64,000 nt of DNA from Mobula hypostoma (Eukaryota): positions 27,404,001 through 27,468,000 of the forward strand of contig NC_086117.1 of NCBI RefSeq assembly GCF_963921235.1, given 5' to 3'. Shown here in pieces: positions 705 to 46,490 of the stretch. The translations under genes and the position numbers were made by a program. How positions within the stretch are numbered: the stretch's first letter is position 1; every line of letters starts with the position of its first letter. Below the pieces are notes generated by a model. It had not been told where the DNA came from. It ran no database searches and saw nothing but the letters and a program-made list of their open reading frames with translations.

Positions 705-3246
705 TAAGTTCTGTATAAGAAGATGAATCTTTAAAATGGGATGCTAGAATATGTAACAAAATTAGCACCCAGTCTAAATTATATATAAATCTTAAAATAA
801 GCATATACAGAAATAAAAACAGCTTTCTTTAAAATGTTGGGAACAGTGAACAAGGCACAAAGTTTAAATGACAATTATTAAATGTAATATTCATTTGGAC
901 ATCACTCATTACTGGAAGGAGCAGTTAGTTAGAACCATTACAGACCCCAGTGACAAGTAGCTTTAAAATCTAAGGAACGTGTTTCACTGAAAAAGAATCA
1001 GCAATGTGGTCACATTGATTCTAAAGAGTATGCAAAGATATTTGGGAAGCTTTCATGTGCTCTTTCTCCTGCATGCAGTTCCCAGACTGGCTGGTTATTT
1101 CTCCTCCTCCTTCCCCAAGGGCAAGTTTTCTTTGTGCTGTGGACGAGGGCCGACTACTCTCTGATATCTCACTGTCCCACACGAATTCCAAACAGCCAGG
1201 TTTGATAAAGTCCCAGGGCCATACAGGCACAGAACCAGATTCTTTGGCCCTTAACTTCCACACTGACCACCTATCTGACATTGGGTAACACTGCAACTTG
1301 GCTAACTGTATGCAAGAAAATGCACACTTTCCAGGAAGGGTCGATCATACTAGCAGTCATCAGAAGAAACTGTGATTGACTGCCCCCCACATCTCCTCTC
1401 CAGACAAGGAGCAACTGTGGCAGACCCCATTCCCAGCTCTGACTAAGACTGGTATTTTACAAACACACCACGGATGGAATCCAGATCTGTATAGCTAAGA
1501 AAATATTCTAATCCCAATAGTATTCACCATACAGAACAAAGATCTTGGGCTCTGGGGGCCAGTCTCTGGATCTCGGTAGAGCAGGCCTTGACCAAATCCT
1601 TACTCACGATGCAACAGAATTACTTACTGAGCACAGGGGCTGCAATTGGATAATGGGAAAAGTAGGTGACTCATGCATGGAATATTGTGAGATGTACAAC
1701 TCAGTCACAATAACATGACATCGTGGGATTCACGCAAGATGTACAAACAACAGTATATCTGGGTAGGCATTGAACATTTGAGTCTCTACAGCTGGATGAA
1801 GACCAAATATTATGGGGTTTACTATTAAGAAGCCACTTTGATATGTGAAACACTACATAAACTAGCAATTTACAACAGTTAAGTAGGCAATTGGCAGAGC
1901 TGATATGAGATATATAAGGAAATGCTATGGAACAAAGTGGGTTCACTGAAACAGCAATGCTGGTGATAGTATCATTTCACTGTGGAAATGAGAGGCTCTG
2001 AATTACTCAATGCTTCAATTTAACAGTTGCAACTTGTAGCTTACAAGAATATGAAAATATAAATTTATATTATATAAAATATCGCTGCAGCGATCTTTAT
2101 ATACAACATATTTTGCGACGTGAGTTAAATCAAATGCCCTTTAACATACTACTTGTGGGGAAAAAAGGATGTAACTATCCTATCTTTTATGATCAAAAAG
2201 TCATTCTACAGCAAACAAATATAGGATTACATCCCTCCCCTAAAAACATGAAATTTGTGTCATACACAGTGTGACTTCTAAATTGTGACAAACAAGGGGT
2301 AGTGCATACATGAAATGTATAAGATTATATTTTTGGGGAAATATATAGAATTCCAGTTTATGTTTTATAAAATTATAAAATTTCTCATATTTTCATTGCA
2401 TAGAACAGGACACTAATATCCATTTAAAAATGATTGTCAAACATAAAAGAAGCATTTTTCCCACCTTACATAAAAAGGTACAATATACTCTAACTTTCAA
2501 TGCCTTCTGCACAGGGAAAAGCAAACTCCTCTAACAGGCGCTGAAGCAGAGGGAGCTTCTTCAAAACTGCATGAGGGAATGTTTTAGTGACCCTCCTTGA
2601 ATATTTGACGATGGATTGGCAAACACCTTTAAGGAGGCCATTTGCACCCCACAGTTCCCCCACAAAGGATTATGTTTCATAAGGCATTGTGGAAGGGAGC
2701 TAGGGTGCAGAATAAACTACATTTACTTACCATGTGTTTCAGTGAAATGTCAGCAATTTGTTTAACATCAGAGTTGGGACGAAGAGAAACCGTGAAAAAC
2801 ACAACTGTTTTCCCTATCCCTGCATGCAAGTCTCTATGAAAGGCTAATAAGCACTGACTGGTCGGGTTGTAAAAGCAGCTATTGTGTTAGACCAAAACTG
2901 TGGTCAGTAGGTGATCGTGTACTGTAAAGGTGCTTTAAACCAGAACACAAACTATCCTCAAAAGAACAATTTCCATTTCTAGTGCATTACACAAGGATAT
3001 CTACAATAAGCAGCATTATGAAAACAGTTTAAGCAGAAACCCCTTCTCATCTCAATGAAATACCCTGGTGCAATGGAATCAGTACAAGAACCTCAGCTTG
3101 TTAAACATGGCAATAGAAGAATATTATGTTGTGGGATTAAAAAAGTCTAACATTCTGAGAAGGTGAAACTGGTTACACTGTGGAGTATGTCAGAACCCGT
3201 CGTGGCTGTTCAGACATGTTTGAGGCTGAGGAAGGGCAGTCCCGTG

Positions 3247-3465
3247 CTATTTGTACCTGGAGGAGTAATATTCTTCTTCCAGCTCGTACAGATCAACCGC
3301 GATCTCATCTCGTAGGGTGATCAGCTTCTTGTCACATTCTTCCTGTAGACTCCGAAGCTGCTGCTTTCGCTGGTTTATGGCTTCGTTCACGGAGGGAAAG
3401 TCGTTCAGAATCAGGAACTGTTTAAGGTCTGACACCAGCTTCATGAGAGACTCCCCAGCACGCAC
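3247..3465 (-). CDS. MED22: MED22 (SURF5) last coding exon, short-isoform C-terminus
   Basis: [32 protein letters not shown]...[12 protein letters not shown]; acceptor tttag at 3466-3470, phase 0; matches the vertebrate MED22 140-aa isoform. Confidence 0.97.
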
Positions 3466-3525
3466 CTAAATCAACACAACACAGAATGAAAACACATCTA
3501 TACATCTATCTATCTATCTATACAT

Positions 3526-3909
3526 GCCGGCTAAACCAGGTGAGGGTAGCCGACGGGTCTCAAACCCTCGGTGAGATAGGGAGCTGTCTATCCCAGCATG
3601 TGAAGACAGACTCCGGCGGATTGAGCGGACGAGACCAATGGAAGGTCCATTGGTTAAGAAGGCGGTCTCTGCAAGCGTCGTGGAACGTGTAGAGCAGGAC
3701 AAGGCACAGAAGACGTCCTGGTCATCCACTGCGCCTAGTCCCATCTCCAGCCGTCTTGCCACTGGATCCAGATGGGAATTGGGAAGAGAGAGTGAGGCTG
3801 ACGCTGCGCAACTCTCCCTCACTTAAATCCAAATCACGCGCTAGTCTCGACACCATCATAATGGTGTTGAGGTCCTCATCGACGTCAACGATGGACGAAC
3901 AACAACAAC
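3526..3909 (+). mobile_element. 5'-truncated copy of the same retroelement in the last MED22 intron
   Basis: Near-identical to 36856-37244; ends gacgaacaacaacaa. Confidence 0.85.
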
Positions 3910-4559
3910 ATATTATAGATATATATAGAAAACAAAAACACAGAATGAAAACATATATAAACACACACACACACACATATATATATATATCTACTGTGGA
4001 TTTACAGGTCAATTTCACTGTGCATTACTTAAGTGGTGTTAAGACAAGTGAAGGCCTAAACTAAGAGATGTGGGTGAGAGATGATTGGACCTGGATGAAT
4101 AGTTAATTTTAAACATTCTGCTCTTGAGGATACAAAAGCAATTTTCTGAAATTATTATATCGAAACAGCCCATACAGCTCCTTGACTCTGCTCCCTTATT
4201 CAATCAGATATCATAATTTCATCTAACCACTTTTCTGTAACCGTGAATGTCCTTTATCTAACAAAAATGAACCAATCTCAGCTTCAAAATTGTTAACTGT
4301 CTGCCACCTTCAACTCTTCAGGTTACAGGATACCAGAACTCCACTATACTTGTGGGACGGAATGCTTCCCTTCAAAGTTGTTATTTTTTCTTCTATGTAC
4401 CACTCACTCTTTATTACAAATGTCCATATTTATAAATTACATTCTCCCCTGTAAGATATGAAACAATATCAAAGAATGAAATTTCAAGGTGATAAATTAC
4501 ATTGAAAGCTTCCACTGTAAATGTTGATTTAAGACATTATAACGCATTAGATCATCATG

Positions 4560-5380
4560 AACTGCAATACCTTGAATATAGCTGTTATACCTCCTCAGTA
4601 TACCTCCTATCAGCACAGGCATGCCTCAGGGATGAATGCTTAACCCACTGCTCTACTCTCTGCACTCTCATGACTGTATGGCTAAGCACTGTTCAATCAA
4701 CATCTATAAATCTGCAGATCACACCACTGCTGTTGATGAAATCTCAGATGGGGACATACAGGAGTGAGATGGATCGGCTAGTTGACTGGTGTCTCAACAT
4801 CCTGATGTTTCTGGATGTCACCATCTTGGAGGACATGTCCTGGGCCTAATACACTGTTGCAAACACAAAGAAAACATGCTAGCATCTCTTACTTATTAGG
4901 AGTTTGAGAAGATTTGGTGTGTCACCAAAGGCCGTTGCAAATTTCCATCAATCGGTGAAGAGCATTAGGACTGGTTGCATCGTGGCCTGGTATGGAGGGT
5001 CCAATGTACAAGATCGCAAGAGGCTGCCAGGGACTGTAGACTCAGCCAGCCTCATCCTGGGCACTAGCCTCCCTACCATCATCAACAGCATCTTCAAGAA
5101 GGTGGCGTCCATCATTAAGGAACCTCACCGTTTGGGACACGCCCTCTAGTCATTCCTACCATCAGTGAGGTGATACAGGACCTACACTCAACAATTCAGG
5201 AACAGCATCTCCTCCACCACCACCATCAGATTCTCAAAAAGTCTATGGATACTATCTCATTATTCCTTTCTTTGTTGTGCTCTTTTTTGGGTAATTTATA
5301 ATCATTTTTATGTCTTTGCCTGAACTGTTGCCATGAAGCAACAAATTTCACATCACTAAGTCTGTGATACAAAACCTGAC
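4560..5380 (+). mobile_element. Decayed Rex1/L2-like LINE 3' end
   Basis: RRFGVSPKAVANF...SIRTGCIVAWYG...HALxSFLPS. Confidence 0.75.
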
Positions 5381-14400: not shown

Positions 14401-15765
14401 TAGACCAGTGAGTCTTACCTCAGTGGTTGGTAAGTTGATGGAGAAGATCCTGAGAGGCAGGATTTATGAACATTTGGAGAGGCATAATATGATTAGGCAT
14501 GGCTTTGTCAAGGGCAGGTCGTGCCTTACAAGCCTGATTGTATTTTTTGAGGATGTGACTAAGAACATTGATGAAGGTAGAGCAGTAGATGTAGTGTATA
14601 TGGACTTTGGCAAGACATTTGACAAGGTACCCCATGCAAGGCTTATTGAGAAAGTAAGGAGGCATGGGATCCAAGGAGACATTGCTTTGTGGATCCAGAA
14701 ATGGCTTGCCCATAGAAGGCAAAGAGTGGTTGTAGATGGATCATATTCTGCATGGAGGTCGGTGACCAGTGGTGTGCCACCGGGATCTGTTCTGGGACCC
14801 CTACTCTTCGTGATTTTGATAAATGACCTGGATGAGGAATAGTAAATTTGCTGATGACACAAAGGTTGGGGGTGTTGTGGATAGTGTAGAGGGCTGTCAG
14901 AGGTTACAGCGGGACATTGATAAGATGCAAAACTGGGCTGAAAAGTGGCAGATGGGAGTTCAACCCAGATAAGTGTGAGGTGGTTCATTTTGGTAGGTCA
15001 AATATCATGGCAGAATATAGTATTAATGGTAAGACTCTTGGCAGTGTGGAGGATCAGAGGGATCTTGGGGTCTGAGTCCATAGGACACTCAAAGCTGCTG
15101 CGCAGGTTGACTCTGTGGTTAAGAAGGCATACGGTGCATTGATCTTCATCAACTGTGGAATTGAGTTTAAGAGCCGAGAGGTAATGTTATAGCTATATAG
15201 GACCCTAGTCAGACCCCACTTGGAGTACTGTGCTCAGTTCTGGTCGCCTCACTACAGGAAGGATGTAGAAACCATAGAACGGGTGCAGAGGAGATTTACA
15301 AGGATGTTGCCTGGATCAGGGAGCACGCCTTACAAGAGTAGGTTGAGTGAACTTGGCCTTTTCTCCTTGGAGTGACGGAGGATGAGAGGAGACCTGATAG
15401 AGGCTTATAAGATGATGAGAGGCATTGATCACGTGTATAGTCAGAGGCTTTTTCCCAGGGCTGAAATGGCAGCATGAGAGGGCACAGTTTTAAGGTGCTT
15501 GGAAGTAGGTACAGAGGAGATGTCAGGGGTAAGTTGTTTTATTTTAAAAAACGCAGAGAGTGGTGAGTGTGTGGAACGGGCTGCTGGCAATGGTAGTGGA
15601 GATGGATGCAATAGGGTCTTTTATTAGAATCCTGGATAGGTACATGGAGCGTAGAAAAATAGAGGTCTATGGATAACCCGAGGTAATTTCTAAAGTAAGG
15701 GCATGTTCGGCACAGCTTTGTGGGCCAAAGGGCCTGTACTGTGCTGTAGGATTTTTTTATGTTAA
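11480..15765 (+). mobile_element. Near full-length decayed CR1 LINE
   Basis: ORF1 with Cys motif/coiled coil and SGNH esterase (IGDSIVR...HIGTND...DGLH); ORF2 APE and RT ([24 protein letters not shown]) with stops and frameshifts; CR1 tail. Confidence 0.93.
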
Positions 15766-16660
15766 CCCAGGTCACTGGAACAGTGAGGCAGAGTTTCAAT
15801 GACAGTGTCATTGTGCCATTCTGTTGCAGTAGTTCATATGGTTTATAATACAAAATGGGCAGAAAACTCAACCCCAGCACCAGGTACAGGCATGGCTTTC
15901 ACAGGAAACTTGAGAAATTAGGTGCTGCCAATGAATGAGATTGACCTGACCACATGGCTTTGAAATTTAAGACACTATGAATCCCTAAGGCAAGAAAGAG
16001 AAGAACAATTTTTTTTAAATCACAAATGAAAGATAAGTTGAACAAGTTTCTGGAAAAGAAACATTTAAGGTGATGGGGTTAGTCTGCAAGACATTGAAAG
16101 CTGCTGGAGCAGTGAGGCAAAATGCAGATCAGGGTAAATGACTGGTGAGCTGGAGACTGCAGGCACACTCTTAAAGGACCAAATGAAAACTCACTGGCTG
16201 AGTAGAGACTGGTATCAGGACGTAGAAAAATTGTGCTTTTCCAGACTGAGTAAGAAGGAGCAGTAATATTTTTCCTTCCTACCCAAAAATAACCCATTTG
16301 CTTCTGTTTCTTACAACAGAATCACTGACCTTCACATCACAGTAAACTTACATAGCCCGATCTTCCTACAATCTCTTCACCATGCAGGTGGAAACCTAAC
16401 TTCTGGTGTAGTCACTCCTGTACCACTCCCCACACAACATGGACCAAACCTGTCCAATCAGACTGCTGGAAAATAATGCATGCAAACCCAGAGTCCATGC
16501 ACGCACATTCCCTGACAACCATCCCTGGAAATCCTGCCGTGGTAAATTTCAGGGCCCAGATGTACAATTGAAAAAATAATCTTCTTAAATGATCAATGTT
16601 AGGAAGATGAAAGCTCTCTTGGAGACCAGCTGTACTTGCTTCAGATTGGTTATCACATAC

Positions 16661-16783
16661 CCGAGCACTTTTAATGATTTCCGTGAAGTTATCCAGAATA
16701 GATTTGATGTCATCTTTCAGTCTCTTGTTGTAGGATTGGAGCAGGATTTCCTTACTTTGAGGCAGAGTCCGTTGCTGGGACAT
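16661..16783 (-). CDS. MED22: MED22 first coding exon
   Basis: [41 protein letters not shown] then gtatgt donor; acceptor ctctcag at 16801, 17 nt before the ATG. Confidence 0.97.
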
Positions 16784-17659
16784 TCTGCTCTTGTCCTACA
16801 CTGAGAGAAGTCACAATAAAAAAGGAAGCACGTGATTAGAGCATTTTCAACACTTTCTCTGCTATCTTGTACTTTTGTTAGGTCAAACACTCTTCTACGG
16901 AGTGAGGACACTACCTTTTAATTGCTGGTGAGATTGCTCTGCTACAGAGGGGAGAATGTTGTCCATGTTTTCTGCATTGTGGATGTGGACTTGGACTGTG
17001 GGCTTTTATTTTCAGTCTTATGGCCTTTTTTGTATTCTGTGTTTCCGTCCGATCCTTCTCGTTTTTTTGTGTGCGGGTGAGGGGAACTTGGGGGTCACTG
17101 TGCTGATTCCGTTTTTGTTAGTTTTTTTTGTGTGGGGAGGAGGGATTTGGGGGTCGATTATCATGCTGCCGTCCTTTTCTTACTTGGTTTCGTGGCTATC
17201 TGGAGAAGGAAAATTTCAGACTTGCATACTCTGATAATAAATAAACCTTTGAAACATAAGTGCCTTTCACAGATGCAAGATAAGTGATCACGATTCTTGT
17301 ATAGTCATGGTCTAGAGCTGCTGACAATTGGTCACAGTAAAACTCTAGGGATGGTAATCAATGTAATAACCTAATTGCTGGATTTAATGAGTCTAATTTC
17401 AAAGATTGTAGGTTCAGTTCTAGTCTAGAGGTTTGAGAAGAGTATTCAGAGACTGCTGTGACTTCTTATGTATTAAACTGGGGTGTTTTTTTTCCCCTCT
17501 CATGTGGATGTAAACAATCTAGCAGCATTGTTTGAAAATAAGTAAGTTACGTCTAGAGTCCTACACCAGTATCCATCTCTCACACAGCTTCACTTATAAA
17601 TGTGATCTGGTTATATTACAGCAGCGTTTGTAGAAACTTACCAAATGTAAATGGCTGTC

Positions 17660-28190: not shown

Positions 28191-28467
28191 TATTTTGAAT
28201 GATATTTTATTAACTTATTTGTGGTAATATTGTATTTTAAGTACCATACATAATATGTATTTTATGGGTGCACTGTGGTCTGGAGGAACTTTGTTTCATT
28301 TGGTTGTATACTGTATATGTACAGTCAGATGAAAATAAACTTCAACTTGAAGCAGTCCAGGAGTAAATTTCTGCCTCCAGTAATGGTGAGCTCCTCAGGG
28401 GCTCAAGTGTTTGTAGATAGTGATAACTGTATTTTAATTTGAAACTGTAAATAGTGTTATGAAGTTG

Positions 28468-30960
28468 TGCGTGTGTGGGATCCATCCCCCCATTGTGAGT
28501 CAGTGTGTGTGTGGGACCTGTCCCCCCAGTGAAGGTCAGTGTGTGTGGGACCCGTCCCCAGCGAGGGTCAATGTGTGTGTGACCCCTCCCCCAGTGAGGG
28601 TCAGTGTGTGTGGGACGCCTCCCCCTAGTGAGGGTCAGTGTGTGTGTGGGATCCGTCCCCAGCGAGGGTCAGTGTGTGTGGGACCCGTCCCCCCAGTGAG
28701 GGTCAGTGTGTGTGGGACCCCTCCCCCCAGTGAGGGTCAGTGTGTGGGTGGGACCCGTCCCCAGCGAGGGTCAGTGTGTGTGGGGGACCGGTCTCCCCAG
28801 TGAGGGTCAGTGTGTGTGTGTGTGTGGGACCCGTCTCCCAGTGAGGGTCAGTGTGTGGGGGACCCGTCTCCCAGTGAGGGTCAGTGTTTGTGGGACCCGT
28901 CTCCCAGTGAGGGTCAGTGTGTGTGTGACCCCACCCCCAGTGAGGGTCAGTGTGTGTGGGACGCCTCCCCCTAGTGAGGGTCAGTGTGTGTGTGGGACCC
29001 GTCCCCAGCGAGGGTCAGTGTGTGTGGGACCCCTCCCCCCAGTGAGGGTCAGTGTGTGTGGGACCCCTCCCCCCAGTGAGGGTCAGTGTGTGTGTGGGAC
29101 CCGTCCCCAGCGAGGGTCAGTGTGTGTGGGACCCCTCCCCTAGTGAGGGTCAGTGTGTGTGGGGGACCGGTCTCCCCAGTGAGGGTCAGTGTGTGTGTGT
29201 GTGTGGGACCCGTCTCCCAGTGAGGGTCAGTGTGTGTGGGACCCGTCTCCCCAGTGAGGGTCAGTGTGTGTGTGTGGGACCCGTCTCCCCAGTGAGGGTC
29301 AGTGTGTGTGTGTGGGACCCGTCTCCCAGTGAGGGTCAGTGTGTGGGGGACCCGTCTCCCAGTGAGGGTCAGTGTGTGGGGGACCCGTCTCCCAGTGAGG
29401 GTCAGTGTGTGTGGGGGACCCGTCTCCCCAGTGAGGGTCAGTGTGTGTGGGACCCGTCTCCCCAGTGAGGGTCAGTGTGTGTGTGTGGGACCCGTCTCCC
29501 CAGTGAGGGTCAGTGTGTGTGTGTGGGACCCGTCTCCCAGTGAGGGTCAGTGTGTGGGGGACCCGTCTCCCAGTGAGGGTCAGTGTTTGTGGGACCCGTC
29601 TCCCAGTGAGGGTCAGTGTGTGTGGGGGACCCGTCTCCCCAGTGAGGGTCAGTGTGTGTGGGACCCGTCCCCCAAGTGAAGGTCAGTGTGTGTGGGGGAC
29701 CCGTCTCCCCAGTGAGGGTCAGTGTGTGTGGGGGACCCGTCCCCCCAGTGAGGGTCAGTGTGTGTAGGACCCGTCCCCCCAGTGAGGGTCAGTGTGTGTG
29801 TGGGACCCGTCCCCCCAGTGAGGGTCAGTGTGTGTGGGGGACCGGTCTCCCCAGTGAGGGTCAGTGTGTGTGTGTGTGTGGGACCCGTCTCCCAGTGAGG
29901 GTCAGTGTGTGGGGGACCCGTCTCCCAGTGAGGGTCAGTGTTTGTGGGACCCGTCTCCCAGTGAGGGTCAGTGTGTGTGTGACCCCACCCCCAGTGAGGG
30001 TCAGTGTGTGTGGGACGCCTCCCCCTAGTGAGGGTCAGTGTGTGTGTGGGACCCGTCCCCAGCGAGGGTCAGTGTGTGTGGGACCCCTCCCCCCAGTGAG
30101 GGTCAGTGTGTGTGGGACCCCTCCCCCCAGTGAGGGTCAGTGTGTGTGTGGGACCCGTCCCCAGCGAGGGTCAGTGTGTGTGGGACCCCTCCCCTAGTGA
30201 GGGTCAGTGTGTGTGGGGGACCGGTCTCCCCAGTGAGGGTCAGTGTGTGTGTGTGTGTGGGACCCGTCTCCCAGTGAGGGTCAGTGTGTGTGGGACCCGT
30301 CTCCCCAGTGAGGGTCAGTGTGTGTGTGTGGGACCCGTCTCCCCAGTGAGGGTCAGTGTGTGTGTGTGGGACCCGTCTCCCAGTGAGGGTCAGTGTGTGG
30401 GGGACCCGTCTCCCAGTGAGGGTCAGTGTGTGGGGGACCCGTCTCCCAGTGAGGGTCAGTGTGTGTGGGGGACCCGTCTCCCCAGTGAGGGTCAGTGTGT
30501 GTGGGGGACCCGTCTCCCCAGTGAGGGTCAGTGTGTGTGGGACCCGTCTCCCCAGTGAGGGTCAGTGTGTGTGTGTGGGACCCGTCTCCCCAGTGAGGGT
30601 CAGTGTGTGTGTGTGGGACCCGTCTCCCAGTGAGGGTCAGTGTGTGGGGGACCCGTCTCCCAGTGAGGGTCAGTGTTTGTGGGACCCGTCTCCCAGTGAG
30701 GGTCAGTGTGTGTGGGGGACCCGTCTCCCCAGTGAGGGTCAGTGTGTGTGGGACCCGTCCCCCAAGTGAAGGTCAGTGTGTGTGGGGGACCCGTCTCCCC
30801 AGTGAGGGTCAGTGTGTGTGGGGGACCCGTCCCCCCAGTGAGGGTCAGTGTGTGTAGGACCCGTCCCCCCAGTGAGGGTCAGTGTGTGTGTGGGACCCGT
30901 CCCCCCAGTGAAGGTCAGTGTGTGTGGGGGACCCATCTCCCCAGTGAGGGTCGGTGTGAG
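28468..30960. repeat. Minisatellite (~31-39-bp unit CAGTGAGGGTCAG(TG)nGGACCCGTCTCC) with ~1.05-1.09-kb higher-order duplication
   Basis: Tandem units seen directly; identical ORF-track peptides recur at offsets of 1054 and 1090 bp. Confidence 0.97.
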
Positions 30961-31340
30961 GGACAGCTCACTCATCTTTGGTCCCCACAGACACTCAGCT
31001 CTCAGTTGTGACTCCAAGTAGCTCGAAGCTGTTGCATGTGATAGGGGCCTCATACCCCAGGGGGAAAGGGACATGCCCATCCTCGCGTGCAGAGTCAACT
31101 CTGGCAGATTGGGTGGATGAGATCAACGGTCAGGAAGGTGGCTCTGCAATGCCCCGTGGACAGCGAGTGACATGATGAGGAACAGAAGTAAATGTGGTCA
31201 TCTGCTACAACCGAGGAAGGTGCTTGTTTGCATCACTGGACCTGGATTTCTAAGACAAAGTGGAACTGCCCTAGTGCAACAGCTTTTCCACTTTACAACT
31301 CCCGCGCACATGTTTCCTGTCATCGGACATGACGGACGCT
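30961..31340 (+). mobile_element. Older, diverged relative of the ribozyme-bearing element
   Basis: Shares ctttggtccccac...cactcagctctca...gtagct...gctgttgcatgtgatag..ggcc...cataccc; P4 and the 3' strand of P2 are deleted; different 3' end. Confidence 0.6.
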
Positions 31341-34952: not shown

Positions 34953-36691
34953 CTGGAATAATCTTATTGTTAATAAGCATATACAAAAAAGATTTCAAAT
35001 AATACAAGTATAATAGACTTCCAAACTCATGATGTAATTAATCATAGAGAAAAAAGAAATAAAAAGAAAAAAATACAAAGAAAACCCCCAAAAAGAAACA
35101 AAAAAAGAACTAAATACTAAACCCAAAAAAGCAAACGGAACAAAACAAGGCTAGACCATTATCTTAAATCGAACACGTTCAATGATGTTGTCAACTCTGC
35201 TCCTCTATTCATATATTTTAAGTTAATAAGAAGGATTCGGAAAGGTCAAATTACATCATATGAAAATGTTGAATAAATGGTTTCCAAGTCTCTTCAAATT
35301 TAACCGAAGGATCAAAAATGTCACTTCTAATTTTTCCTAAATTTAAACATGATATAGTTTGGGAAAACCATGCTAAATCTTTCACTTCTTTTATTTTTGT
35401 TTATTTATTTACTGAGAATCGTTTCAGAATAGCCTCTTGCAGCCACGCCACCCAGCAATCCCCCATTTAATCCTAGCCTAATTGCGGCGCAATTTACAAC
35501 GACTAATTAACCTATCAATCGGTTTATGTCCTTGGATTGTGGGAGGAAACTGAAGAAAACCCACGGGGAGAACATATAGGCAGCAGTGGGAATTGAACCC
35601 ATGTCGCTGGTACTGTAAACTGGTGTGCTAACCACTATGCTACTGTACAACTTCTCTGCAGTATTTCATATCCTTAATAGCCAAAAATCAATTGAACTCT
35701 GAAGAATCTTTGTGATTGAACCTCCACAATCCCATTGGATATATCTACTTCCCACTGGGTAAGACATTTCTTTTCATCTCTTTAACCCCTATGAAGACTG
35801 TGACCCATGGTCCTAGACACATCAACCATCCTCTGCATCAACCCTGTCAAACCTACGAAGAATTTTGCATGTTTCAATGAGATTATATTTCATTTGTATA
35901 AATTCTAGAGAATATAAACCCAGACTGCCTAATCTCTCCTCAAACGACAAATCTGCCACCCGGGAATGAATCTAGTAAACCATTACTGTTTTCCCCATTA
36001 GCCTTCCTTAAATAGAGAGGCCTATCTTGCAGGAATGCTCTTACCAGTGCACTATAAAGTTGGGGTAAGATTTCAAATCCTCTTGAAATTAAGCACAATA
36101 CCACATAACTTTATAATTGTTTGCTTCACCTGCATGTTAACTCTCAGTGTCAATTGTACAAGAAACATTTAGACGTTCCTCTACACCCAAAGTCCCCCCC
36201 AGCTTCTCCCTCCCGCACGTAAGCAGCAGTGAGCAATGACTCCCCCTCCCCCCACCAGAAATAAACACGCATCGGTACCATCGCCGAGCCCAAGCGTGTG
36301 CTGAGCAATAGCAAAGATACAGACCAAAGTTACCCCAATGGCTTCACATTTCATCCGATATTCGACAAACCACAGGTTCTCTCTCTCCCTGGCAAGGGGG
36401 AGGGAGGTGTCTCCCATTTTCACAGTGAGCGGGATGTTATTTGCACATTATATTCCATGTGCAATTTCATTGCCATTTTATTAAGTCTGTTTGTATACCT
36501 TGAAGCCTCTTTGTATCCTCCTTACAACCTACACTGACACCTAATAGAACATTACCACCCTTTGGCCAATGATGTTGTTCCAGCCTTTTAACCTTCTTTG
36601 AGATCAATCTAACTCTTCCCTCCCATATTGCCCTCCATTTTTTTCTTAATCCTTGTGCCTGTGTAAGAGTAACCATCTCTTGTAAGTGTAT

Positions 36692-36877
36692 GGGGTGTCA
36701 GGGAGGGTTAGCACCTCTGGTGGGGGAACATGTCGCGTCCTTTTCAAGGCAGTTAGTCCACCTTTGGTCCCCACCTGGCACTCAGCTCTCACCTGTGGCT
36801 CCCTGTAGCTGTTTGCATGCGACAGCGGCCACACCCCGGGCAACGGCTCCGACAAGCCGGCTAAACCAGGTGAGGGT
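36692..36877 (+). ncRNA. HDV-like self-cleaving ribozyme (predicted) at the 5' end of a retroelement
   Basis: P1 GGGGTGT/ACACCCC, P2 GCTCTCACCTGT/ACCAGGTGAGGGT, P3 GGC/GCC, P1.1 CC/GG, GCAA, P4 CGGC/GCCG and J4/2 G-C-TAA, all in HDV order; folded by eye. Confidence 0.8.
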
Positions 36878-37244
36878 AGCCGACGGGTCTCAAACCCTCG
36901 GTGAGATAGGGAGGTGTCTATCCCAGCATGTGAAGACAGACTCCGGCGGATTGAGCGGACGAGACCAATGGAATGTCCAACGGTTAAGAAGGCGGTCTCT
37001 GCAAGCGTCGTGGAACGTGTAGAGCAGGAGAAGACACAGAAGACGTCCTGGTCATCCACTGCGCCTAGTCCCATCTCCAGCCGTCTAGACTCTGGGTCCA
37101 GACCACTGGATCCAGATGGGAATTGGGAAGAGAGAGTGAGGCTGACACTGCGCAACTCTCCCTCACTTAAATCCAAATCACGCGCTAGTCTCGACACCAT
37201 CATAATGGTGTCGAGGTCCTCATCGACGTCAATGATGGACGAAC
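36692..37244 (+). mobile_element. Non-autonomous RTE-type short retroelement, apparently full length
   Basis: Imperfect TSD aagag(t)aaccatc at 36665-36677 and 37245-37256; 5' ribozyme; 3' stem-loops; near-identical second copy with a (CAA)n tail at 3526-3909. Confidence 0.8.
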
Positions 37245-37849
37245 AAGAGAACCATCAAGAAAACTGGTTATGCAGTACTGTGCAAAAGTCTTGGGCATAT
37301 ATATTTAGGGCCTCAGTTGGAGGGTTGATTTCAATATTGGGTACAGCACTTTCAGAAGGATAGCTTGACTCTACACATATTGTGTTGTTGGATTATGAAT
37401 AAGATTATAAGAAACATAAGCAAACTTAGGCTATTAGGCCCTTTGTACATCCTTCTGTATTCAACAAAACCATCACCCGATCTCCCTTCCCCTTGTACCA
37501 GCCATGATTCCCCTCTCCCTGTCTCCTTCCCACCCTCAGTCCACAATAGAGACCCATATCAGAATCAGGTTTATCACCACTTTCATATTTCATGTTTTTT
37601 TTGTGGCAGAAGTACAGTGCAATGCATAAAATTATTGCAATACTGTTTGGATTCCTGGATGTTAGGAAGTTTAGGCAAAAAAAAAGCAGGTGTTTCATTT
37701 CATCAGAAAGTTCAGATGAGAAGGGGAGTGGTTGATGGAGGTGGATGATCTCTTGAAAATGCTGAGTCTTTCCTCCTGCCATCAGATTTCTGAACATTGC
37801 ATTAAATCATAAACAGTATTTCATTATTCCTTTTACTTTGCACAGTTTA

Positions 37850-38236
37850 CAGTACTGTGTAAAAGCCTTAGACAGCGGAGATTTTTATATGGTTTCAGAG
37901 GGTATGGCCTCCACAGGGCCCTGATCTCAACATCATCGAGACTGTCTGGGATCACCTGGAGAGACAGAAGCAAGCGAGACAGCCAGAGTCTGCAGAAGAA
38001 CTGTGACAAGTTCTCCAAGATGCTTGGAACAACCTACCAGCTGATTTTCATATAAAACTGCATGACAGTGTACCTAAGAGAATTGATGCGGTTTTAAGGG
38101 CAAAAGATGGTCACACCTTTGATTTGATTTAGTTTTTTCTAACTGTATTGTATTTTTTGATATTTAGAAACTGTCGATTTCATTATTTTGAAAGCATCTT
38201 TACAGATTTTTTGCTGAAGACTTTTTCACAGGACTG
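37850..38236 (+). mobile_element. Internally deleted Tc1-like element
   Basis: Ends cagtactgtg...cacaggactg; encodes WPPQGPDLNIIETVWDHLERQ; another TIR fragment at ~37273. Confidence 0.7.
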
Positions 38237-43274: not shown

Positions 43275-43348
43275 TGCAGATGATGTAAACAGAATATTTG
43301 CTATCTGAGTTTAACGGATGACATTTATCCACCAAGATCGCTGATGCA
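43275..43348 (+). ncRNA. SNORD24: Box C/D snoRNA U24, RPL7A intron 3
   Basis: TGCA terminal stem, C box ATGATGT, guide AATATTTGCTAT + D' CTGA, guide CCACCAAGATCG + D CTGA; matches vertebrate U24, a known RPL7A-hosted snoRNA. Confidence 0.95.
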
Positions 43349-43461
43349 CTCGAGTCCCTCTACCAGCAGCAGCTTGTGAAACTAACACTTGCTTCCTGCC
43401 CCCACATTCTCTGCCCCACTCCACCCAAAATATCCTGGTTAATGACGATTCATTTTTGCAG

Positions 43462-43602
43462 CCACCCAGCTCTTCAAATTGGCACACAAGTACAGGCCCG
43501 AGACTAAACAAGAGAAGAAGCAAAGGTTGCTGGCCCGGGCTGAGCAGAAGGCGGCTGGGAAAGCTGACGCTCCCACAAAGAGACCTGCTGTTCTCAGAGC
43601 CG
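43462..43602 (+). CDS. RPL7A: RPL7A exon 4
   Basis: [47 protein letters not shown]; 141 nt. Confidence 0.98.
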
Positions 43603-44286
43603 GTAAGATGGGTTCCCTGCTTGCTTAACTTGAACTGGCGACGCAGACTCGATGGGCCAGGTGGCTGCTATATCTTGTGGTCTAACTTGTAGTTGACATT
43701 GGATATAGAAGTGAATGGCATTCTTGACTAAGGTGTGAGAGGATTGACACTAGTTCACTTGCCTTTCAGTTAGAATAGTTAGAGGGATATTATTGACTAG
43801 TATTGGGTATGGTGATGCGATTTCAGGGAGTTGCTTACAGTTAATAGCCATTGTGTACCTTTTATGGTGGACCTGACTTAATTCTTTGTAAGCTCAGCTT
43901 CTCGTGCAGCTTCTCTATTATTCCCTGACAATTCCAGTGCACTCTTCCGCTGGTTATCTTCAGTGAGCTTCCTCATTTATTTGTTCTTGTGCCCTAATCT
44001 GTATTACTGTGTTCAACCACCACCTCTGTGCTTTTGGACTTGCTCTGGTTGATGTTCTTAATTTTGTTAGGATCCCTCCAACACCTGTCTCTGGTCCTCA
44101 ACCATTCTAACTTTGTCTCTGGTTCTCTAAATCCACCAACTGCAGTGCATTTACTATTGATGACTTGGGGTTGTATTCCTAGGCTCTGCATTGGTGCTAA
44201 GGAAAGTTTACTGTTTTAATCTTTGCTTTTAAGTTCTGTTGCAGTCTCCCTCCAATCTCATTCTTGTGATAACAAATTGGCTAATG

Positions 44287-44362
44287 TTGCAATGATGTTT
44301 GAATTTCTTCACCTGAAGTTCAGCATGTAGATCAAACAAACGAGCTTTTTAACACTGAGCAA
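44287..44362 (+). ncRNA. SNORD36: Box C/D snoRNA U36, RPL7A intron 4
   Basis: TTGC/GCAA stem, C box ATGATGT, 28S guide TTGAATTTCTTCAC + CTGA, 18S guide GAGCTTTTTAAC + CTGA. Confidence 0.94.
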
Positions 44363-44454
44363 CAAGCCATGGGTCTTCTCTCTCGCCTTCCTTGTGGATT
44401 GAGGATTTTTGTTTTCTAAGGGATTTGGGGATACAAGCAGCAGTTAAATGTATA

Positions 44455-44919
44455 CGAGGGGTGATTGAGAAGTTCATGGCCTACAGTAGAAAGAATGAAT
44501 TTTAGAAAACCTAGCACATTTATTTTTCAACATAGTCCCCTCCTACATTTACACACCTAGTCCAGTGGTCGTGGAGCATACGTATCTTGGACCTCCAGAA
44601 AGTGTCCACGGCAGGGGTGATTGATAGGTTCGTGGCCTGGAGACGAGTTATACAGCTCTTGTTACAGGCATGTGCAGTTCAACTCTTTGAGTGATTATGC
44701 AGAAAGTTTGAAGTTAAAAACTCATCTCCTTCTACCTTAGGCCACGAACTTATCAATCACCCCTGCTGTGGACACTTCCTGGAGGTCCATGATCCGTATG
44801 TTCCATGACCACTGGACTAAGTATGTAAAAGTACGAGGAGACTATGTTGAAAAATAAATGTGCTAGGTTTTCTAAAATTGACTCCTACCTTAGGCCACAA
44901 ACTTGACAATCATCTCTGG
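44455..44919. mobile_element. Mariner-derived fold-back MITE in RPL7A intron 4
   Basis: TA-flanked; ~170-bp inverted arms containing a mariner transposase C-terminus remnant (GDYVEK*) and a second, internal TIR pair. Confidence 0.85.
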
Positions 44920-44965
44920 TAACTAATTGGTGCAGAAAGACTGGACGATTTTGTTGTATACCTGA

Positions 44966-45103
<138 letters not shown>

Positions 45104-45473
45104 TAAATCTAGACCCAATTTGGGCGCCAGGCATAACTATACTGATGACTTCATGCTGCTGGAGATTTTCCCATCTGAGGTGATGGCAAAGCTGTTTCAG
45201 AGATGGGCAATCTTTCATTATTTACGGAGGGGCTTTCTTCGATCATCAAGGCTGCTCTGCCCTACACAAAGGATGATCTTACTCCTTGTGTCTCTATTTG
45301 TTGAGACTGGGATGAAGATGTTCTCAGTTTTGTTCCTTGTATTTGACCAAGCCAAATTCATAGATTGTGCATACTGGGAGCTGGAAGGTCATCATTGTTG
45401 GTGTGGCATGGGGGCTTGACTGGGTCATCAAAATCTCTGCTTCCCTATTCATCTGTTATGCATCAGCCTGGCT

Positions 45474-45552
45474 AATGTGATGATGAATTTGAATTTCTTC
45501 ACCTGAAGTTCAGTGTGTAGATCAGAGAAACGAGCTTTTTAACCCTGAGCAT
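45474..45552 (+). ncRNA. SNORD36: Box C/D snoRNA U36, RPL7A intron 5
   Basis: C box RTGATGA, both guides, D box CTGA at 45545-45548; external stem cagcctggct/agccaaggctg. Confidence 0.94.
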
Positions 45553-45981
45553 CAAGCCAAGGCTGTGCTGTATATCTGATTCAGAGGGACCTTCCCTTTC
45601 TTCCTAAACCTTATTTGTTCAGTGTTCCTTCCAGTAGTTTGGAATGAGAGAATTTTCAATTGAAATAAATCCCAGACACTTGTAGCAATGTGTGGGTGAA
45701 ATGAGAAGTGTCAGTGTGTCAACTTGGTGCTTAAATTCCAAATTCCCACATGGTTCCTGCCTTCCCTGTTCCCAATTTCTTGTTCCTTTATTGCTAGGCA
45801 TTTCGCTGCCTGAGCCTTGGGTGTAGCTTAAGCTTAATAGCTGAGTTCACTTTAAAACACACCAATTACGCTAAAGGGTTTGACTTTGATAATTTTCTGT
45901 GAAATAGAATCTTTTGTGTAAGAGTTGATTAGTCAAGCCAGTACTAATCTCCATTTTCCACTTCCCTGATGCCGCCTCCAG

Positions 45982-46112
45982 TTGGTTGTGTTCCTGCCTG
46001 CCCTCTGCCGTAAGATGGGAGTTCCTTATTGCATTGTCAAAGGCAAAGCCAGACTGGGGCGTCTTGTGCACAGGAAGACTGCCAGCTGCCTCGCTTTTGC
46101 ACAACTAAACCC
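45982..46112 (+). CDS. RPL7A: RPL7A exon 6
   Basis: [44 protein letters not shown]; 131 nt. Confidence 0.98.
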
Positions 46113-46416
46113 GTGAGTAACCTGTCTATTACTGACGATTGGGAGTGGTGTGTCACTTGATCTGTTTACTGTGTTTTCATGTTGATCAGTCAGCAAGAGC
46201 TGATCTAATAGTATTTCCAGCATTTGGTGTGATGGTGGGGTAGAGTCCTTTGCAGTTCTTGACCTATTGGTAATGAAGTAAAAATGAATATTGAAAACAA
46301 TGCCAGAAGGCTTCTTTGAGGGCACCGGCTCTTTGGGGTTTGATTCTCCTCTCCGTTGGCATATAGTACATTAAACCAGGGTGTACAGCTACTTCCTCTA
46401 GCTGGGCTGAACCAAG

Positions 46417-46490
46417 AATGCAATGATGTGCAATGAATTTCTTCACCTGAATAACCATGTGGTATTTTGAGCTTTTTAACCCTGAGCATT
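46417..46490 (+). ncRNA. SNORD36: Box C/D snoRNA U36, RPL7A intron 6
   Basis: AATGC/GCATT stem extended by tgaaccaa/ttggttca; C box ATGATGT; both guides; D box CTGA. Confidence 0.94.

Follow-up and report, generated by a model that had tools for sequence, protein, structure and literature searches.

The window, by which we mean the whole 64,000-nucleotide stretch of DNA analysed here, holds a non-coding retroelement of about 560 bases (36686–37244) with a fold of the hepatitis delta virus (HDV) type at its 5′ end, together with a second copy and an old fragment of related sequence (Table 1). Hallmarks of retroposition are present, namely a target-site duplication (TSD) agreeing at 12 of 13 nt and a 5′-truncated copy at 3526–3906; a preliminary description had mentioned this TSD, which is genuine but imperfect, with one extra T on its left side. 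At its 3′ terminus the window copy reads ...GATGGACGAAC. ARAGORN found no tRNA-like head on the element, and we found no coding capacity in it that survives comparison from copy to copy. An antisense frame free of stops for 186 codons does run along the minus strand (36649–37203) across the whole 36686–37244 element, and we rejected it as a gene: it is broken in the copy at 3526–3906, has no Pfam match and probably arose by chance. The 14-nt segment that shifts this frame is absent from that same copy, and family depth over the segment is about 100-fold lower.

Other repeats adjoin these copies. On the 5′ side of the insertion site lies another abundant repeat family (36587–36640), with a depth of 30,000–110,000 compared with about 1,300–4,800 in the next bin. 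Just 3′ of the element are Tc1/mariner-like termini (CAGTACTGTGCAAAAGTCTT...) and a transposase-like remnant (37262–37320 and about 37850–38140), which in the run data form a separate abundant repeat. A 2.5-kb array of 34–36-nt tandem repeats (CCCC..AGTGAGGGTCAGTGTGTGTG) with higher-order periodicity occupies 28400–30950, directly upstream of the old element fragment, and SNORD24 and three SNORD36 copies, the customary intronic snoRNAs of RPL7A, are found on the plus strand at 43275–46490. These snoRNAs mark the window as vertebrate DNA.

Table 1. Coordinates of the short element, its ribozyme-like head and related copies in the window. L001, L004, L014 and L017 are full-length LINEs with the same kind of head; P1′ denotes the 3′ strand of P1.
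Feature	Position	Strand	Remarks
Left TSD, AAGAGTAACCATC	36665–36677	+	Equals 37245–56 save one extra T
Junction bases, TCTTGTAA	36678–36685	+	Eight bases, neither TSD nor family sequence; final TAA where the family has GGG
GTGT, remnant of the true P1 5′ strand GGGGTGT	36686–36689	+	First three G's lost in the window copy
AU spacer between P1 and J1/2	36690–36691	+	AT in window, L001, L014 and L017; AG in L004
J1/2 insert, closed stem-loop of ~93 nt	36692–36784	+	MFE fold; J1/2 of each homologue folds alone as a closed hairpin; five pairs with double-sided changes
P2 5′ strand	36785–36795	+	Partner 36867–77; double-sided change at two pairs; 9–11 bp in each homologue
P3 5′ strand, GGC	36797–36799	+	Same in 7/7 sequences
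L3, 28 nt	36800–36827	+	UCCCUG-UA, then inserted hairpin (36808–12/36822–26), then G
P3 3′ strand, GCC	36828–36830	+	Invariant
P1 3′ strand (P1′), ACACCCC	36831–36837	+	ACACCAC in L001, ACACCCU in L004
P1.1 3′ strand, GG	36838–36839	+	Partners C36802/C36801; GG in 7/7, CC in 6/7
J1.1/4, GCAA	36840–36843	+	C next; variants GCAA, ACAA, GAAA; UACA in second subfamily
P4 hairpin, CGGCU/AGCCG	36844–36859	+	36844–48/36855–59, 6-nt loop; paired in 100% of cells
J4/2, G-C-U-A-A-A-C	36860–36866	+	Putative catalytic C = 36861, invariant; motif C[U/G][A/G]AAC in 7/7
P2 3′ strand	36867–36877	+	Partner 36785–95
Body of short element	36878–37195	+	Homologous to LINE 5′UTR; 81% identical to L001; no Pfam match
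Tail, ends GGACGAAC	37196–37244	+	Homologous to LINE 3′UTR
Right TSD, AAGAGAACCATC	37245–37256	+	AAGAG-AACCATC in alignment; pairs with left TSD
Second copy, same family	3526–3906	+	5′-truncated inside P4; ends GGACGAAC(AAC)3; 93–96% identical to 36852–37255
Old decayed fragment, related subfamily	30960–31340	+	5′-truncated; P4-to-P2′ region deleted; blastn identities 65–74%

Reading the core of the window copy base by base, we recovered all the helices and core bases that the preliminary description had drawn. P3, the UCCCUG start of L3, P1.1 and GCAA all lie where it had placed them, its P4 (CGGC/GCCG) is present within a 5-bp CGGCU/AGCCG helix, and its G-C36861-UAA is found in J4/2 with the same C in seven of seven sequences. 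The P2 helix also exists, but in a register one base off the range given for it (36785–96/36865–77), such that 10 pairs and one G·T form while T36796, A36865 and C36866 stay unpaired. The match between GGGGTGT at 36692–98 and ACACCCC at 36831–37, on which P1 had been based, does comprise seven Watson–Crick pairs; we regard 36692–98 as a second copy of the P1 heptamer, situated in the 5′ arm of the J1/2 closing stem (36693–702 with 36774–83 in the MFE fold). Inside J1/2, the two hairpins that had been proposed (GAGG/CCTC and GGTGGGG/CCCCACC) can be drawn but are not preferred by comparison, as they and the MFE alternatives score alike at 81–88% paired.

Scanning metagenome contigs with the core 26-mer returned a single match, L001, and the same scan gave no match in bacterial or archaeal genome contigs or in viral contigs. 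L001 proved to be a full-length LINE whose 5′UTR matches the short element at 81% identity along some 520 nt, whose ORF of 1070 aa carries Exo_endo_phos (AP-endonuclease) and RVT_1 (RT) domains, and whose 3′UTR of about 35 nt ends GGACGAAC(ATC)n. A protein search yielded 1726 relatives, and we took the contigs of twelve, mostly from freshwater and marine metagenomes. The LINEs possess a single ORF of 1055–1085 aa with Exo_endo_phos and RVT_1, followed by a 3′UTR of 30–50 nt and then by (AAC), (ATC) or (ATT) repeats, with no poly-A tail. The exact GGACGAAC end occurs in 14 of 16 LINE loci checked and a one-base variant of it in 2 of 16, usually with a microsatellite next, and a stem (GGTCCTCATCG...) is common to the window tail and the LINE 3′UTR. 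Because of the 81% 5′UTR identity and this common tail, the short element is, judged by its sequence, a LINE 5′UTR joined to a 3′ tail, and hence an internally deleted, non-autonomous derivative; we call the parent ‘RTE-like’ by architecture alone (single ORF, very short 3′UTR, microsatellite end). The family's parent LINE is thereby identified.

Searched with the LINE protein, viral contigs gave no match, and genome contigs gave only two, both contaminants and both lacking the 5′ end. L002 (CAZDEC010000195.1, a Thioalkalispiraceae MAG) and L003 (NZ_QYYA01000041.1, Alcanivorax profundi) are contigs from bacterial assemblies that encode this animal LINE (71–74% identity), and both assemblies are probably contaminated with eukaryotic DNA. 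Several relatives (L006–L008, L009, L010–L012 and L018) have the mid-5′UTR in common with the others and possess heads that are different or cut off, and these were excluded from the structure alignment. Among them, the heads of L006 (1–120), L007 (60–200) and L008 (1–120) start CAGTGGGCAGATATTCACATCTGCACGGG... after unrelated flanks and form a 6-bp hairpin with no obvious HDV-like core. A block of about 270 nt in the 5′UTR (window 36925–37195; L001 and L004–L009 in alignment A3) shows about 70% conservation in all lineages, even those with different or cut-off heads. Stops interrupt all of its frames, and it has the look of a non-coding RNA domain under conservation, which the short element retains.

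Comparison of copies placed the 5′ boundary of the family upstream of where it had been expected. In every species, the family contigs align with the window as far as 36686 rather than 36692, and the consensus of the family contigs before 36686 is an AT-rich flank ending GGG (136 contigs in X1). Because the alignments stop there and the upstream consensus ends GGG, the family starts GGGGTGTAT-GGGGTGTC..., with TAA (36683–85) at the position of its GGG in the window copy. L001, L004, L014 and L017 have unrelated upstream flanks and all start at this upstream heptamer, such that the earlier proposal that the ribozyme's first base is also the element's 5′ boundary holds in four independent full-length LINEs. 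In all four the upstream heptamer pairs with P1′ at 7/7 positions; in L001, GTGGTGT faces ACACCAC, the changed P1′ base being compensated by a G>U in the heptamer, and the ACACCCU of L004 gives a G1·U37 pair. All homologues use the downstream heptamer to close J1/2. Thermodynamic folding of the family 5′ end has P1, the J1/2 stem, P3, the L3 hairpin and P4 forming together at −77 kcal/mol with the P2 strand free, to which P2 contributes about −19 kcal/mol further, and comparison of folds indicates that the J1/2 stem must open if the downstream heptamer serves as P1. Because of the boundary, the L001 covariation and the use of the downstream heptamer in the J1/2 stem, cleavage is predicted directly 5′ of the upstream heptamer's first G. 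The predicted cleavage point is then the first base of the element, 9 nt upstream of the site first suggested.

That first suggestion took the downstream heptamer (36692–98) as P1, with a cut at T36691/G36692, the element starting there and the preceding bases re-copied from the target site, and we consider it improbable. It draws on the window copy, in which the downstream heptamer pairs with ACACCCC at 7/7 positions and the upstream one at 4/7, and on L004, L014 and L017, which also carry a near-perfect second heptamer; yet the nine upstream bases, GGGGTGT followed by AT (AG in L004), are inherited by the family and by the four LINEs, which implies that the RNA template includes them and makes GTGTAT (36686–91) element sequence rather than re-copied target. 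The downstream heptamer of L001, GGGTATT, can pair with P1′ at only 3/7 positions, the compensating change sitting in the upstream one, and in all homologues the downstream heptamer is engaged in closing J1/2. With the upstream heptamer as P1, the ribozyme of the window copy itself is probably impaired, because the first three G's of P1 are lost and 4/7 pairs are left, and a construct beginning at G36692 would be without the true P1 strand. Some contigs from RNA runs span the 5′ junction, but all that follows from this is the presence of read-through RNA that is uncut, or of DNA.

The fold was evaluated on an alignment (A4) of seven sequences, namely the window copy, four LINEs with complete heads (L001, L004, L014 and L017) and two with 5′-truncated heads (L016 and L013); relatives are 67–83% identical in the ribozyme block. 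The double-pseudoknot fold pairs 90.1% of cells on A4, as compared with 28–49% when the 3′ partners are slid by 1–3 columns. Ten pairs change on both sides, a count that 0 of 500 shuffles reach and that the slid controls approach with at most 4, and since the sample is small and made up of relatives, we regard the slid-partner control as more reliable than the shuffles. These double-sided changes include a G-C to U-A replacement in P1 of L001 (with G·U in L004), U-A to A-U and C-G to U-A in P2, G46-C57 to A-U in P4 of L017, and G-C to A-U in the L3 hairpin, whose closing pair reads G-C, G·U or A-U; five further pairs of this kind lie in J1/2. Covariation had been named beforehand as a check for P1, P2 and P4, and A4 contains it in all three, which bears out the proposal that an HDV-like fold heads a non-LTR retroelement. 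Folded on its own sequence, each homologue forms a P2 of 9–11 bp, an L3 hairpin of 5–6 bp and a P4 of 4–5 bp, and support for P2 is under-counted on A4 as MAFFT misplaces a one-base-pair insertion in the P2 of L004.

Other positions are fixed. P3 and the catalytic C show no variation in 7/7 sequences, and the U-C-C-N-N-G start of L3 is found in 6/7, the dead, truncated L013 having C>A; because there is (nearly) no variation there, P3 and P1.1 are conserved but their pairing is unproven. Positions 4–5 of L3 are free (CU, CC, CA, AA, UA, UC), and J1.1/4, the P4 loop and J1/2 vary among homologues. This distribution of fixed and variable positions is as expected of an HDV-like core.

We also considered how often such a motif arises without any conserved structure behind it. 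A strict descriptor, with the features as found and generous loop lengths, matches once on both strands of the window, at the 36692 site, and has 0 matches in 20 Mb of composition-matched random sequence, which served as background for both descriptors used. A much looser descriptor has 28 matches in the 20 Mb, or about 0.18 per window. The motif was spotted by eye and with generous loops, and at about 0.18 chance matches per window for the looser descriptor, the latitude of such a search is a non-trivial concern. A chance look-alike is nonetheless a very remote prospect in our estimate, given the null result of the strict descriptor, the covariation of five structural elements and a pairing level of 90% among relatives that differ as much as these.

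Rfam scans of the window (at the gathering threshold and at E<=10) found no ribozyme match at this site, and the heads of L001, L004, L014 and L017 likewise gave none. Only the sister lineage L005 matched an Rfam ribozyme model, aligning weakly with drz-agam-1 (RF01787) over P2, P3, L3 and J4/2 (26.7 bits, E=0.23, under the gathering cut-off of 37), whereas the window version has no such match. L005 (69–215) carries a different HDV-like head in the same place, with a canonical core and no P4: its P1 pairs GGGGGGT (69–75) with ACCCCCT (186–192) and has a G·U first pair, its P3 is ACC/GGT, its L3 is the 7-nt UCCACGU and its J4/2 reads CUAAAA. A G-rich near-repeat follows the P1 strand in L005 as well (GGGGGGT-AAAT-GGGGTCC).

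Several parts of the core read as they do in HDV itself. The genomic HDV ribozyme has GG-GCAAC after P1, the antigenomic one has GGCUAA in J4/2, and the window element has both; the U-C-C-N-N-G of HDV L3 is likewise found here, with UCCUCG in L017. Relative to HDV, J4/2 is two bases longer and one base stands between P2 and P3, and the setting differs too, as this is a genomic repeat rather than a viral circle and carries a J1/2 insert, an L3 insert and a G-C first pair. The largest departure from canonical HDV-like ribozymes is in L3, which is 26–28 nt long here and contains a conserved 19-nt hairpin insert, compared with 7–8 nt. L3 is normally fixed at 7–8 nt and builds the active site, and motif descriptors assume that length. 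Our literature search found no earlier report of an L3 hairpin insert. In place of the canonical G1·U37, the first pair is G-C in the window family, L001, L014 and L017, and G·U only in L004.

HDV-like ribozymes head the R2, RTE, baggins and L1Tc non-LTR retrotransposons (PMC6765202, PMC7936874), and those two papers credit the 5′-end ribozymes to Ruminski et al. 2011, Eickbush & Eickbush 2010 and Sanchez-Luque et al. 2011. The present head resembles those ribozymes in that a promoter-less LINE opens with a nested double pseudoknot, in a predicted cleavage point that is the element's first base, in a long, variable J1/2 and variable P4, and in a conserved core of P3, L3, P1.1 and the J4/2 C. 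Its long J1/2 has precedent, because the two P1 strands of R2 ribozymes lie from 23 to over 700 nt apart (PMC3774820). Unlike known LINE ribozymes, it has a second copy of the P1 strand 9 nt downstream, within the J1/2 stem; at the R2 5′ junction, the cleavage site can move where P1 strands are duplicated (PMC3774820). The short element, in turn, resembles the R2 SIDEs and NARTc (PMC3414825, PMC3383444), which are internally deleted and combine a LINE 5′ ribozyme with a 3′ end and no ORF, and by that analogy it is presumably mobilised in trans. It differs from them in descending from an RTE-like LINE of aquatic vertebrates that is not site-specific, and in that the family is very abundant.

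The departures just listed bear on a further reading, namely that this is a structured 5′UTR conserved for a non-catalytic role (internal promoter, translation start or protein binding) and that its likeness to HDV is partly coincidence. Such a reading would account for an L3 of three times the canonical length, for the absence, except in L004, of a G1·U37 wobble that is described as important for HDV catalysis (bioRxiv 10.1101/2022.09.22.508989), and for the lack of an Rfam match, and other roles do exist, as the L1Tc head is promoter and ribozyme both (PMC3383444). We regard it as unlikely, though less so than the other alternatives, since conserved and free positions fall where HDV-like ribozymes require them, the pseudoknotted P1 and P2 both covary, P1 begins at the element's first base, and in L005, the sister lineage, the corresponding place is taken by a canonical core.

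Public sequencing runs, compared as assembled contigs, reveal how widespread the family is. About 15,000–17,000 contigs per DNA run align to the element, and family words occur in runs that bear the labels of 14 or more organisms, each genome run having over 10,000 contigs. A second subfamily is dominant in the organisms labelled F and M, in which P2, P3, P1′ and J4/2 are unchanged, J1/2 is about 60% alike (about 40% differs), L3 reads UCCAAG, J1.1/4 reads UACA and the P4 pair G45-C58 has become C-G. Decayed genomic copies also show ACACCCT, by way of CpG loss. The short retroposon with its putative ribozyme head is a very abundant, recently active family in many related aquatic vertebrates.

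Taken together, the data show the fold and its covariation, where the element begins and ends, and its descent from the LINE, and the account we favour, and hold to be likely, is of a genuine HDV-like ribozyme that uses the upstream P1 and heads a non-coding derivative of an RTE-like LINE. Very probably, the first ~190–195 nt of the element RNA are a self-cutting RNA of the hepatitis delta type that stems from the front of the RTE-like element. Catalysis and the route of transcription we infer from the R2, RTE and L1Tc ribozymes. By that analogy, the element, which has no recognised promoter, would be transcribed within host read-through RNA; its source RNA would run through P1 (GGGGUGU/ACACCCC), the AU spacer, the J1/2 stem-loop, P2, P3, L3, P1.1, P4 and J4/2; and the ribozyme would cut directly 5′ of the first G of P1, leaving an RNA that starts exactly where the element does. 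The RT of the LINE would then copy this RNA by target-primed reverse transcription, beginning at the common 3′ tail.

A ribozyme at the head of a LINE is expected biology, and what is new is the L3 insert and the abundant vertebrate family that carries it. If the RNA cleaves, then current searches miss a whole class of ribozymes with an insert in L3, and the duplicated P1 strand offers a natural test of the cleavage-site shift proposed for R2. More tentatively, and with the odds rather against it, this may be a distinct HDV-like variant that tolerates or needs an L3 stem-loop and a G-C first pair, and in which the duplicated P1 strand is a folding switch. Were that so, the second P1 copy would either close J1/2 or compete for P1′, timing or limiting self-cleavage, and the switch would be acting in a family of vertebrate retroposons that numbers tens of thousands of copies.
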